Position numbers and translations under genes: made by a program. 64,000 nucleotides of DNA, taken from the NCBI RefSeq assembly GCF_001194135.2, contig NC_068982.1, positions 168,992,985 through 169,056,984 on the forward strand, given 5' to 3'. This DNA comes from Octopus bimaculoides (taxonomy: Eukaryota). Numbering within the stretch: position 1 is the first letter of the stretch; the number at the start of each line of letters is the position of its first letter. Positions 25,182-28,200 of this stretch are shown here, in pieces. Under the pieces are notes generated by a model that was not told the origin of the DNA, ran no database searches, and saw only the letters and a list, made by a program, of their open reading frames with translations.

Positions 25182-25231
25182 CTAAACAGGGAGGGTTGGG
25201 TGGGGGCCAAGCATGGCCCATCCCCATCGTC

Positions 25232-25238
25232 ATTAGTG
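25232..25238 (-). promoter_or_regulatory. Branch point consensus CACTAAT for the exon I acceptor
   Basis: Matches YNYTRAY. Branch A is at 25233, about 51 nt upstream of the AG, with a hairpin in between. Confidence 0.6.
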
Positions 25239-28200
25239 CTCAGACAACATGATGGGCGACTAAAAGGAAGCCACAGAATTAGGCAGTGCACCCACTCAGT
25301 TAGGACAACAATAATATCAGTTAGAATGTGGAGTAGCAACAATAACACAGAAACAGACAAATTAATCAGGAAGCAAAGAGCTATTAAGGTTGTGACTGCT
25401 TACAGAATTTGAGAAATCCTCACTACAATAGGAAATTATTAGTGGACAGTTGCATCAAAAAAATACATTTTAAAATCATTAGCTACAATTGCTGCTGCCA
25501 TTCATCTTTCATCCTTGTTTCTTTTGAAACTTTTGCAGAATAGCTTACCTTTTACTGTTTCTCTATTACCTAATAACTGACATTAAGCAGCTTAATATTA
25601 ATTATAAATTTAGGAACTCGGATATAAGTGAAACCATCAAACAATTATGTTTAAATACTCTAAAACTAGTAATATTTTTATTATTGTTGCCACTGCCTTA
25701 ATCTGGAGCTTACTGTTAAAAAAAAAAAAATATGCAAAGCAATAATCAGATCAATTAATATATATATTAAGTCTTCATCAGAAGTGATGGCTTCAAACCA
25801 GTCTAAATATGTCTATGAGTTTAATTAACCCTAGACTACGCATACAACTTGATCTAACCCTGATCAATGTCAGAATTTCAAAAGGACCAGTTTTCTCCAG
25901 TATGGTTGGGTGTTAAATGATGTTCTTGAAGCCTGGCACTGTGACAGCAGAAGTGAATACAGCAACAATGAATTGATAAAACCTGAATTATATATACACA
26001 CATACATGAAAAATTTAATTTCAAAAACGGGAAAAAATTCACTAAAGCTACTTCTTTCTTAGTTACATTAATTCACCTAGACGACATCATTTTTCCAATG
26101 GTCATATTAACTGGTTTTAAGAAGTTTTAGGAAAAAAGAAAGTTATGACAATGAGAGGGTGCACAGCCAAAGAAACTCCACAAAAGATGTAGTAGCACAG
26201 CTATAGGTTTCTCAATATATATTTATTAACAAAACTCGATATTAACTAACTGTAGTTCAAACACGTTATTTTCCCCACCCTTATCAGCTCAGAGTTTAGA
26301 AGTAAAACTTAGAGACATTCAACAACTTTCATTACAAGCTACCTATCAAAGAATGCTTCAATTTCACTGTAAGGTAAATGAATTAATGTAAAGAAAGTAT
26401 TTTTTCATTTTGCAATTATAATAGAAAAAGTACTAGTTTGTTATCCTTAGTTAAACAAATGCTTACATCAATTCAAATAATGTTTTCAAATAGCAAATTT
26501 TCACTTCATATAAGTATTCTATTTCTTTTTGACTTGACACGGTCAAATTTTCTGAGGAGGGATATAGTTAATTGAGCCAACTTCAGTATAACAAGTATTT
26601 TATTAACCTCAAAAGTGGCTGAATACAGAACATGGAGAGACAAAACTAAATGTAATGTATTTAGTACTCTTTCTACCAACTCTCACAATAATGATTTCTA
26701 ACATTGGCACAGTCCACAAATTTTGAAATCGAGGGAGGTCAGCATCTGAACTGGTCCTGGTATACAACTGGTAAATTAAGCCTAGAGATGAAAAGTTACA
26801 GCACTCTACAACATTGAACAGTAGTATATATGACGTACTTTGGTTATATCTGCTACCTATATTTTTGAAATTGCAGTAGTTAATAAAGACAACTAAATAA
26901 TATGATTGAGTAGTTTTAAATCATGGTTAAAACATTAAAAAAAATTGTTGAAAAAGTTCTAATGTGGAAGATACATAAATAAAAACTAGTAGTAATACTA
27001 ATGACTGCTGCTGCTGCTGGCCACATTTGATGTGGTACCAAAATGGAGAAAAGACAACAAAATTTTGAATAATTAATAACTAAATAAAGTAGAATTTTCT
27101 TTGAAAAAATAAAATAGGAGAGAGATATATGAAGTGTAAATAATGATGGTAAATATGTTTACTCAGGTAAAAACTTCTGTTTGAGAACTGTTTGATAAAT
27201 GTTTGTCAAAAAGGGGATAAGAATTTAGTTTCCTCACCCATCTCCATCTCAAAGCTTAAAGTCAAGATGATAAAACAATGCTCATAGACAAAAATTAGGT
27301 TGGGGAAAAAGGAAGGTTAAATTGAATAAAGAAATGTTTAAGTGATAAAGTGAAATCTGTATCAGAATTGAAATTTAAGTGGTTATTCACTTGAAATTGG
27401 AATTTTCACTGTTTCATTTTCAATTACCATCACTCTCAGATTTTGATTTGCAAAAACTTTTAATAATATGAAATTTCAAACCAAAAACTCATATCATCTA
27501 AACTGCCAATAATGACAAAAAGCCATTCTGATTATAAATATATAATATATATTTTTTAATTGCAATTTTATCCAACTCCTGAAGAGAGTTGAATACAAAA
27601 TTGAAACATCAAACTAGCTAGTAAGACCATCTCAGAATAAATTACCTACAAAATTTTCGTTATTTGGTTTCTTACTCAAGTGCAAAGTTTCAGATCCATA
27701 CACAAGGAAATACGGAAAGTGCAACATTCATATTTTACTCAAAGACATCAGGTAAGTGAAGTGAACTATCTTCAAAATTAGGATTCAAAACCAGCTGCAA
27801 ACATGGTAGACTGGAAATCCCCATTTTGTTCTCAAGCAATTGCCATACTAACACATATTAATTGTATTTTCCATTTTAAATATCGTTTTATTTTGTTTTT
27901 TGTTGGGGGAGGAGGGGTCGCTAAGAACAAACCATGCTATCTCTCAAATGTGTAAGTAGTAACATAATTGAAGCTCAACCATAACTTCAATCTGAAAACA
28001 AGACTACATCACCAAAGTAAACACACCAACAGTTCTTACTCTTTAAATAGAAAAAAAAATTTAACTCTCGTTAATCAAAACAAATAATAAGATATCAGAT
28101 TATATATAGCCCAGTTTACTTTTAACAAGCAATATTGAGGCCAAAGATAGTGTTATATAAGTATATTTTACATTTACAAAAGGAAAAAAAAGCTTAAATA

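Follow-up and report, generated by a model that had tools for sequence, protein, structure and literature searches.

The DHX15 locus and its second acceptor

DHX15/PRP43 of Octopus bimaculoides, read directly from the sequence, sits on the minus strand of the window (the whole 64-kb stretch of DNA that was analysed), and all of the features below lie on that strand. When the partial gene model was compared with the O. bimaculoides protein XP_014781058.1, 675 of 675 aa matched. Exon 7 of this model (exon ‘H’, 30649..30840) is in phase 1 at its 3′ end, which reads …AUGUUGUCAG|guaguacu at 30649; its donor is CAG|GUAGUA, with the GU at 30648-30647. The downstream exon, encoding VPQCF…HAFKQ (25059..25181), starts at 25181 after the annotated acceptor AG at 25183-25182, and three junctions lie 3′ of this start in the gene model (25059/24624, 24434/19644 and 19475/16761). 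DHX15/Prp43 functions in spliceosome disassembly and, together with SUGP1, in the rejection of weak branch sites; the DHX15-SUGP1 pathway is put out of action by SF3B1 mutations associated with cancer.

It was observed that the same intron carries an alternative acceptor, reading GGCUUCCUUUUAG, whose AG is 78 nt upstream of the annotated one. Its pyrimidine tract (tract 1) and AG, CUGUGGCUUCCUUUUAG, occupy 25260..25276 (AG 25261-25260), and the branch-site motif CCUAAUU (motif 1, 25277..25283) places the predicted branch A at ∼25279, ∼19 nt from this poison AG. Joining of exon ‘H’ to the poison acceptor includes a 78-nt extension (25182..25259), as indicated by the sequence and by the transcript junction described below. 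Phase-1 translation of the extension gave V A H H V V and a stop, then VPQCF after 19 further residues. The stop, a UGA at the 7th codon past the junction (25240..25242), is the sole in-frame stop of the extension. It lies ∼180 nt before the next exon junction, beyond the >∼50 nt of the exon-junction rule. An earlier sequence-only reading had described the acceptor, the branch motif, the frame-preserving 78-nt extension and VAHHVV-UGA, and every detail was exact on direct reading; the ‘several junctions before the last exon’ of that reading correspond to three junctions after the UGA in the gene model.

The acceptor survey covered 26.9 kb of DHX15 introns, in which there are 1,498 AGs. A comparable pyrimidine tract plus a pyrimidine at -3 was found at 43 of them (∼1 per 630 nt, the introns being AT-rich), and when CUAAY 13–50 nt upstream was demanded in addition, a single AG was left, which was the poison acceptor. 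The motif by itself is moderately unusual. That the extension measures exactly 78 nt and has a single stop is, taken alone, not beyond chance, since one stop per 26 codons is the chance prediction.

Productive acceptor and predicted RNA structures

The annotated, productive acceptor has a branch-site motif of its own, CACUAAUG (motif 2, 25231..25238), with the predicted branch A at ∼25233. From this A to the productive AG there are 51 nt, which are AG-free throughout. The C-rich pyrimidine tract 2 with the productive acceptor, …CCCUCCCUGUUUAG, occupies 25182..25206. The yUnAU of branch site 2 was invariant in 9 animals, and an AG-free zone of 51–76 nt preceded the productive acceptor in every species examined. 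Between branch site 2 and the acceptor a hairpin is predicted (25197..25226), with an inner stem of GGGCCA (25219-25214) and UGGCCC (25209-25204) and an outer stem of UGGG/CCCA, in which the C-rich tract would be partly buried. The GGGC…GCCC arms were invariant in 7 animals. Equivalent hairpins appeared in single-sequence folds, with z-scores that were each modest and individually weak. RNAalifold gave no consensus structure for the MAFFT alignment of nine animals, so the hairpin claim rests on the invariant GGGC/GCCC arms and the single-sequence folds.

A long-range helix is also predicted, which involves a conserved block in the same intron (26144..26220), ∼0.9 kb upstream of the element. 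The identity of the block to Sepia and Argonauta was 87%, with no variation in the 3′-most 16–17 nt. The 5′ arm of the helix, 5′-GGCUGUGCACCCUCUCA-3′ (26152..26168), pairs at 15 of 17 positions with the 3′ arm, 5′-UGAGUGGGUGCACUGCC-3′ (25282..25298), which is located directly 5′ of the poison branch-site motif with a 2-nt overlap. This was the sole match of such quality in the 64-kb window, with 0 expected; the cofold gain was modest, being equalled by 7 of 200 shuffled blocks. The helix was also examined in Octopus, Sepia and Haliotis by a duplex scan with shuffled sequences as controls, and the Haliotis partner had a different sequence in which complementarity was kept by covariation. As both arms are invariant in cephalopods, covariation comes only from Haliotis and one Sepia position. 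In the fold, the 3′ arm could alternatively form a local stem (25298-25288 with 25258-25250). The possibility that block 26220-26144 is a cassette exon was rejected, as it has no usable donor or acceptor.

Conservation of the intron 3′ end

The last 113 nt of the intron (25294-25182) showed gap-free 100% identity in three Octopus species, two Argonauta copies and Acanthosepion. The identity continued into the first 22 nt of the exon, all seven cephalopod sequences compared being the same, giving 135 nt in a row (25294-25160) without a difference among coleoids. If one 1-nt Sepia indel is allowed, the conserved intron 3′ end extends over 117 nt (25182..25298). The run of 135 nt among coleoids falls below a strict ultraconserved element (at least 200 bp at 100% identity). 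Between Octopus and Sepia, the nucleotide identity was 89.4% for the VPQCF exon, compared with 81.5% overall for the other DHX15 exons (range 77–86%), and the remaining intron flanks of the gene were alignable over just 2–29 nt. At exon-level identity, an identical run as long as that at the intron 3′ end would be expected by chance at ∼1e-10. Because 113 nt of perfect identity exceed what splice signals need, it is likely that the block is under some additional constraint. The poison AG and the stop, on whose conservation the sequence-only reading depended, were both kept at 100% from octopus to cuttlefish. In one study, only 1,187 squid-octopus conserved non-coding candidates were obtained at a similarity of at least 95% (PMC9023564).

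Beyond cephalopods, the acceptor motif CTGGCTTCCTTTTAG|TC was identical in Haliotis (abalone) and Pecten (scallop), in which the two CUAAU branch sites were also retained and an in-frame stop again came early; motif 1 appeared as CUAAU/CUAAC in Pecten and Haliotis. The Haliotis extension was 76 nt with the stop at codon 8, and that of Pecten was 90 nt with a different stop at codon 12. Among the species compared, frame preservation of the extension was restricted to coleoids. A pyrimidine-rich AG upstream of the conserved second branch site was found in amphioxus, with a stop at codon 3, and in the annelid Owenia, with a frame shift and a stop at codon 34. The squirrel-monkey intron contained just a branch-site-like motif and a different hairpin, and offered no clear homologue of the poison acceptor. 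A metagenome scan for the acceptor together with the second branch site returned zero matches, and a second scan returned one genomic contig, of animal origin (L013).

Transcripts spliced in the same intron

It was found that a Logan contig, SRR9970001_9133 (L012), contained the exact junction of exon ‘H’ to the poison acceptor, …AUGUUGUCAG|UCGCCCAUCAUGUUGUCUGAGCACUAAU. Its ORF (P0247) terminates in …ITAMLSVAHHVV, i.e. VAHHVV. The contig was 99% identical to the A. pharaonis mRNA as far as the junction, implying a cuttlefish-like animal; being one assembled contig, it speaks for the existence of the junction, not for its abundance or regulation. Judging from the identity with the cuttlefish sequence, the poison acceptor is presumably used in O. 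bimaculoides too. In a contig from a JGI metatranscriptome (L010), splicing of the same exon brought in a 53-nt extension that meets a stop at once, the rest being fully spliced. The upstream acceptor of this transcript lies in the same intron and differs from the cephalopod one, and the encoded protein was closest to those of heterobranch gastropods. In an insect contig (L011), just this DHX15 intron was retained. With the conservation and the transcript evidence together, the poison acceptor stands far above chance. The choice between productive and unproductive 3′ splice sites that had been proposed from the sequence is strongly supported by the conservation and by the L012 junction with its VAHHVV* end.

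A candidate unproductive-splicing switch and its alternatives

We consider it probable (∼0.72) that DHX15 contains a conserved unproductive-splicing switch, by which its dosage is controlled through a poison 3′ splice site. The intron before the VPQCF exon would end in two complete tandem 3′ splice-site modules. Use of the upstream module, consisting of the CCUAAU branch site, the U-rich tract and the AG at 25261-25260, would add the 78 nt with the UGA at the 7th codon, and translation of the resulting mRNA would end within the HA2 domain, leaving a helicase devoid of the OB-fold. As three junctions follow the stop, degradation by NMD is expected. Use of the downstream module (CACUAAU branch site, GC hairpin, C-rich tract and AG 25183-25182) would give the functional mRNA. 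Because the productive branch site is located downstream of the poison AG, the choice would be made at branch-site selection, namely U2 snRNP recruitment, and not by AG scanning. The isoform balance is probably set by the two conserved RNA structures: the 3′ arm of the helix would cover the SF3a/b anchoring region, ∼20 nt immediately 5′ to the poison branch site, and in the productive module the hairpin may shorten the 51 nt that separate branch site and AG. The switch is probably ancient and coupled to NMD, and its most likely role is to control, through unproductive splicing, how much of an essential spliceosome helicase is made. We infer NMD sensitivity and regulation, and likewise roles for both structures and feedback by DHX15.

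Such feedback is possible; DHX15 acts at the branch-site selection step. In its fullest form, which we regard as tentative and on balance doubtful, the element would be an RNA switch, mollusc-old or possibly bilaterian-old, through which DHX15 senses its own activity and exerts negative feedback on its own pre-mRNA. The relative use of the two branch sites would depend on DHX15 itself, or on a helicase-sensitive helix near the poison one, and the identity among coleoids would reflect two structures that overlap and exclude each other, the long-range helix and the stem 25298-25288/25258-25250.

Another explanation is that the block mainly serves the productive splice, as a structured 3′ end of the ‘distant branch point’ type, and that the stop-containing isoform is a tolerated by-product; the upstream acceptor-like module would then help to recruit U2AF/U2 or to define the intron. 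The unusual 51-nt gap, the C-rich tract and hairpin kept across phyla, and a conservation greater than a simple decoy requires are in line with this explanation. Nevertheless, we consider it unlikely. The upstream AG is complete and strong, was kept at every base as far as abalone and scallop, led to an early stop in each case, and is used in vivo, as seen in L012. Furthermore, other lineages have their own, different stop-bearing upstream acceptors, a sign that the unproductive outcome is selected for. Recursive splicing was ruled out, since the extension begins with UC and not with GU.

It is distinctly less probable that the acceptor is incidental to some other RNA or DNA role of the block, such as an editing-complementary or ADAR structure, an intronic ncRNA or an enhancer. 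Sequence around edited sites is constrained in coleoids, and the higher identity of the VPQCF exon (89% vs 81.5%) and the long-range pairing could be accommodated by such a role. However, around the element Rfam returned E>1 noise only and ARAGORN no tRNA, and global folds of the element gave z of ∼-1 on both strands, with nothing miRNA-like or unusually stable. Comparison of the S. pharaonis mRNA with the genome across DHX15 revealed no A>G mismatches, and the 3 non-A>G differences were located at one alignment edge. What persists out to gastropods, bivalves and amphioxus is precisely the set of splice signals, namely the acceptor, its branch site and the productive one, and the hairpin before the 3′ splice site.

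That the extension is coding appears very improbable. By this account, the UGA would be recoded through A-to-I editing to Trp, readthrough or selenocysteine insertion, giving a DHX15 with a 26-aa insert. Coleoids are known for heavy A-to-I editing, and in them the extension is 78 nt with the UGA as its lone stop. But at 76 nt the Haliotis extension shifts the frame, those of Pecten (90 nt) and the gastropod transcript (53 nt) carry other stops, and the block showed zero synonymous-type variation, a pattern which is not coding. The insert would, in addition, land inside the HA2 domain (PF04408/PF21010 region). In the 64-kb window, neither a SECIS element nor any other Rfam family scored above the gathering threshold. 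The only transcript over the site, L012, reads UGA; it is a consensus sequence, and an A at the stop is compatible with low-level editing. The 5′ neighbour of the A to be edited is G, the least favoured ADAR context. The rescue of a longer DHX15 by UGA-to-UGI editing, which the sequence-only reading had put forward as more speculative, thus found no support in the A of the contig, in the loss of frame in Haliotis or in the 5′ G. The 1% divergence of L012 from the S. pharaonis genome comprised substitutions of mixed type, a sign of another population or species and not of editing. A chance cryptic acceptor producing splicing noise, with which the frequency of good-tract AGs and a single stop in 26 codons would agree, is effectively refuted by the identity among coleoids, the motif kept across molluscan classes and the use in a transcript.

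Relation to known systems and significance

The candidate switch in DHX15 resembles several known systems. In Drosophila transformer, a regulated choice is made between two 3′ splice sites, the upstream of which is stop-bearing, and Sxl binds the upstream tract in one sex. In both genes two acceptors compete within one intron, the upstream one leads to a truncated ORF, and the decision would fall at recognition of the pyrimidine tract or branch site; unlike in transformer, where control is exerted by Sxl, the predicted control elements of DHX15 are RNA helices. Splice-site choice can be steered by conserved RNA pairing over long distances within an intron, and Gooding and colleagues reportedly described, in 2006, exons whose branch point is distant or whose AG-exclusion zone is long. 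The DHX15 intron is comparable in its boxes hundreds of nt apart and its AG-free zone of 51–76 nt. Compared with known pairing introns, the effect of the DHX15 helix is a prediction, with covariation from two lineages.

Ultraconserved poison exons and splicing coupled to NMD are said to occur in SR-protein and hnRNP genes, following work by Lareau and colleagues and by Ni and colleagues in 2007. DHX15 would share with them a stop-introducing event in a gene of the splicing machinery, non-coding sequence more conserved than the coding exons, and a presumed homeostatic control of dosage. In contrast to these cassette exons, DHX15 would have an exon extended by means of an upstream alternative 3′ splice site. 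Its clade is the molluscs, with traces in other invertebrates, and not the vertebrates, and its block of 113–135 nt is under the 200-bp definition used for vertebrate ultraconserved elements.

A further counterpart is found in SUGP1, where a cryptic 3′ splice site in intron 6, seen on AQR depletion in human cells, leads to a 58-nt insertion, a PTC and NMD (PMC12434867). As in DHX15, an upstream 3′ splice site yields a short stop-bearing extension; in SUGP1 this reduces the amount of the product, itself a component of the DHX15-SUGP1 branch-site quality control. The SUGP1 site is cryptic, with no deep conservation reported for it, whereas that of DHX15 is kept across species and is served by a consensus branch site of its own.

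The literature searched contained no description of a poison, NMD, autoregulatory or ultraconserved event in DHX15, of DHX15 editing in cephalopods, or of how DHX15 dosage is set. The element is among the few non-coding elements conserved across coleoids. If the proposed switch is true, it would provide a concrete homeostatic mechanism for DHX15, in which the choice is made at the branch-site step, and would add an invertebrate case to the puzzle of ultraconserved poison events in splicing-factor genes.

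The DHX15 gene and its two acceptors

The minus strand of the window was found to carry most of a DHX15/PRP43 orthologue. Eleven exons, from 45613 to about 16650, were located in the window by tblastn with a human DHX15 query, and GT-AG exon boundaries were then set by inspection. The resulting 675-aa gene model was 100% identical to XP_014781058.1 of O. bimaculoides, and its identity to the protein of O. vulgaris/sinensis was 99.7%. Exon H, immediately 5' of the two-acceptor intron, was a phase-1 exon ending at 30649; the AG of the annotated, productive acceptor was 25183-25182. 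The upstream, poison acceptor (GGCUUCCUUUUAG, minus strand) had its AG at 25261-25260, with CCUAAUU (branch site 1, 25283-25277) about 19 nt upstream. The extension between the two acceptors (78 nt, 25259-25182) was translated as VAHHVV, a UGA stop (25242-25240) and 19 further residues, then VPQCF of the next exon; three exon junctions lie downstream. The sequence-only reading had described the end and phase of exon H, both AGs, CCUAAUU and the 78 nt with their stop, and all of these statements were correct on direct reading.

A second branch site (CACUAAUG, 25238-25231, minus strand), which that reading had not mentioned and which was a stronger branch-site match than CCUAAUU, was found within the extension, and inspection of the sequence between it and the productive AG revealed no AG. 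The intron thus ends in two complete tandem 3' splice-site modules, with the poison AG upstream of the productive branch site. A further AG at 25239-25240 (minus strand, cuGAG/cac) overlaps the UGA; its use would give a 57-nt in-frame extension without a stop, adding a 19-aa insert. This AG has a G at −3 and is not the first AG downstream of branch site 1, and nothing pointed to its being used.

Conservation of the intron end

Orthologous loci of O. vulgaris, O. sinensis, Argonauta hians (two copies), the cuttlefish Acanthosepion pharaonis and O. bimaculoides (L007, a genomic locus showing no differences from the window over the region) were compared. In 7/7 cephalopod sequences there was no difference over the terminal 113 intronic nt (25294-25182) or the 22 exonic nt that follow; the four bases 5' of this run were also shared, save for a 1-nt insertion in the cuttlefish. 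Directly 5' of the block the intron could not be aligned, Octopus versus Argonauta included. Between Octopus and cuttlefish the other ten DHX15 exons were 77–86% identical (81.5% pooled), and the other DHX15 intron flanks were alignable over 2–29 nt only. The probability of an identical run this long at exon-level identity was about 1e-10; constraint on the intronic block thus far exceeds that on the coding sequence of an essential helicase. The element (25182..25298, minus strand) falls short of the strict definition of an ultraconserved element (200 bp).

The exon that follows (25059-25181, minus strand) was 89.4% identical in nucleotide sequence between Octopus and cuttlefish, higher than the other ten, which suggests exonic splicing signals or structure tied to the switch. 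The two Argonauta copies (L003, BAAFZT010000130.1; L004, BAAFZT010000083.1) encode an identical 735-aa protein on separate contigs, and their two-acceptor introns differ in length (12.3 kb versus 8.4 kb). A different contig encodes part of a third, variant protein (P0242); these copies could be haplotigs or recent duplicates.

The corresponding regions read GGUGCACUGUCUAACAUACUGGCUUCCUUUUAG/UC…UGAGAACUAAUGGCGCUGGGGCCGGGCCGUCAUGGCCCCCACCCACCCCUGUUUAG/ in Haliotis rubra (abalone) and GGCUAAUAUACUGGCUUCCUUUUAG/UC…ACUAAUGCCGAUGCGGAUGGGC… in Pecten maximus (scallop), showing that the same poison acceptor with its own branch site and early in-frame stop is present in three molluscan classes. The extension was 78 nt in coleoids, 76 nt in Haliotis and 90 nt in Pecten, with the first in-frame stop at codons 7, 8 and 12, respectively; the early stop was kept and the frame-preserving length was not. 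Branch site 2 was also kept in amphioxus, the annelid Owenia and an animal metagenome contig (L013), and its yUnAU was invariant in nine animals. These three also keep GGGC…GCCC hairpin arms ahead of the productive acceptor and a long AG-free zone (51–76 nt). A pyrimidine-rich AG just upstream of branch site 2 was observed in amphioxus, where codon 3 after it is a stop, and in Owenia, where the frame was shifted and no stop occurred until codon 34. The squirrel-monkey intron had no clear poison-acceptor homologue.

Another block (22042-22225, minus strand), in the intron between exons 24624-24434 and 19644-19475, was 81% identical to Argonauta and 79% identical over 75 nt to cuttlefish. Its centre, UUUUUUUCAG/GUAUUCCAGUCUYGGCAUCAGGUUUGGCUCACC, contains an acceptor-like site and then donor-like GU motifs. 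The block may represent a recursive splice site or else a short cassette exon, either regulated or of the poison type. Interspersed repeat copies (about 31790-31957 and about 13070-14545, with dozens of matches in the Argonauta loci) and long dinucleotide-repeat microsatellites (about 3230-3535, 6360-6430 and 28400-28560) are ordinary cephalopod intron and intergenic content.

Use of the poison acceptor in transcripts

In the cephalopod DHX15 90%-identity cluster, the 539-aa member P0247, with the terminus …[18 protein letters not shown], was traced to a fully spliced contig, L012 (Logan assembly SRR9970001_9133), which shared 99% identity with the DHX15 mRNA of A. pharaonis. It reads …AUGUUGUCAG/UCGCCCAUCAUGUUGUCUGAGCACUAAU, the upstream exon being joined exactly to the predicted poison acceptor. 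An assembly artefact was rejected, as the two joined pieces share no sequence able to create the junction. The contig ends 28 nt beyond the junction, which may be due to the junction path rejoining sequence common to unspliced reads in the assembly graph. It differed from the A. pharaonis genome (L005/L006) by about 1%, with mixed substitution types (A>G 4/16), and from this pattern it probably represents a different population or sister species rather than edited RNA.

A search with the reading frame of the intron plus exon as query also found ORFs of other animals that begin inside the intron and run on through correctly spliced downstream exons. In L010, a JGI metatranscriptome contig whose protein was closest to heterobranch gastropods, the same exon was joined to a 53-nt extension starting UGAACUAAUGG, with an immediate stop that divided the message into ORFs of 529 and 215 aa. 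A retained mini-intron was rejected in favour of an alternative acceptor, since excising the 53 nt as a GT-AG intron would leave the message out of frame. An insect-like contig (L011, Logan SRR26183430) retained exactly this one intron (84 nt, 1693-1776). ORF starts inside the same intron were also seen in many assembled transcripts or gene models of unrelated animals (P0250, P0251, P0253, P0259, P0264 and P0266 among them), and many animals may retain this intron or use alternative 3' splice sites here.

A candidate long-range helix

A second conserved block in the same intron (26220-26144, minus strand) showed 87% identity with its Sepia and Argonauta counterparts and ended in 16–17 invariant nt. 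Within it, 26168-26152 (GGCUGUGCACCCUCUCA) was complementary at 15/17 positions to the 5' end of the element (25282-25298), which lies about 870 nt downstream and directly 5' of the poison branch site. This was the sole such match on both strands of the 64-kb window, with none expected from 100 shuffles, and 26168-26152 was the best duplex partner across the entire 5.4-kb intron. Cofolding recovered the helix with a gain of −13.9 kcal/mol, equalled by 7/200 shuffled blocks. When the 25 nt preceding branch site 1 were scanned against each species' intron, with 100 shuffled versions as the control, duplex energies were −27.8 kcal/mol in Octopus (reached by 1/100 shuffles), −28.4 kcal/mol in Sepia (0/100) and −30.7 kcal/mol in Haliotis (0/100). 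The Haliotis arms (element GUGGCAGGUGCACUGU, partner ACAGUGCACUCUGCCAC, about 130 nt apart) both differ from those of cephalopods with complementarity retained, and in Sepia one change per side lengthens the helix by one pair; these changes are covariation, limited in extent but genuine. Single-sequence folding predicted two alternative pairings: a local one between the 5' segment of the element and the start of the extension, and one between the UGA region and UGUUUAG at the productive acceptor.

Alternative explanations

The element could serve mainly to make splicing at a difficult productive 3' splice site efficient, the poison isoform being incidental, but a complete upstream acceptor and stop are conserved base for base, and other lineages keep different stop-bearing acceptors. 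Another RNA- or DNA-level function could also be considered; however, there was no Rfam match, stable global fold or editing signal, and what persists across phyla is the splice signals. The extension could instead be a recoded coding insert, and rescue of a longer protein by editing of the UGA had been raised speculatively from the sequence. This was not supported, as the homologues are 76, 53 and 90 nt long, the L012 contig is unedited, the edited base would have a 5' G, and no SECIS was found.

By motif alone the poison acceptor was no more than moderately unusual. The DHX15 introns (26.9 kb) contain 1,498 AGs, of which 43 had at least 13/17 pyrimidines plus a −3 pyrimidine, and the poison acceptor alone also had CUAAY 13–50 nt upstream; its pyrimidine tract matched the quality of the ten real acceptors scored. 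The frame-preserving length and single stop were unremarkable. A reading of the poison acceptor as noise is contradicted by its conservation, and this comparative evidence is decisive against chance.

Proposed mechanism and significance

The DHX15 intron ends in two tandem 3' splice-site modules, the upstream of which adds a premature stop, is conserved and is used in a close relative. The choice between productive and unproductive sites proposed from the sequence was thereby supported in substance, by conservation and by the L012 junction. Metazoans generally possess NMD and EJC factors and the position of the UGA accords with the exon-junction rule, so the poison isoform would be an NMD target. 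Since the poison AG precedes the productive branch site, selection of a branch site by U2 snRNP would be the deciding step. SF3a/b bind the anchoring site, a region of roughly 20 nt directly upstream of a branch site; the long-range helix would cover this region at the poison branch site and, when formed, disfavour it. In the productive module, where branch site and AG are 51 nt apart, the hairpin would bring them closer together. In junction use, stop position and conservation the element agrees with unproductive splicing coupled to NMD (AS-NMD).

In its behaviour the element resembles the ultraconserved poison events known from genes for SR proteins and hnRNPs, as well as other AS-NMD circuits of core spliceosomal genes. 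By topic its nearest parallel is SUGP1, the activator of DHX15, which has an upstream 3' splice site that likewise brings in a stop. The full-text literature searched held no account of an event of this kind in DHX15 from any organism, and the event is therefore counted as new, its regulatory type being already known. According to work cited in PMC12434867, as outlined there, DHX15 with SUGP1 proofreads branch-site selection, which makes direct feedback of DHX15 on its own splicing an attractive idea, one that we consider rather unlikely. The system may buffer DHX15 dosage. What distinguishes the element is an unusually clean two-branch-site architecture with a candidate structural switch; it combines striking conservation with a familiar regulatory type, and is a concrete, testable candidate for dosage control of a medically relevant helicase.
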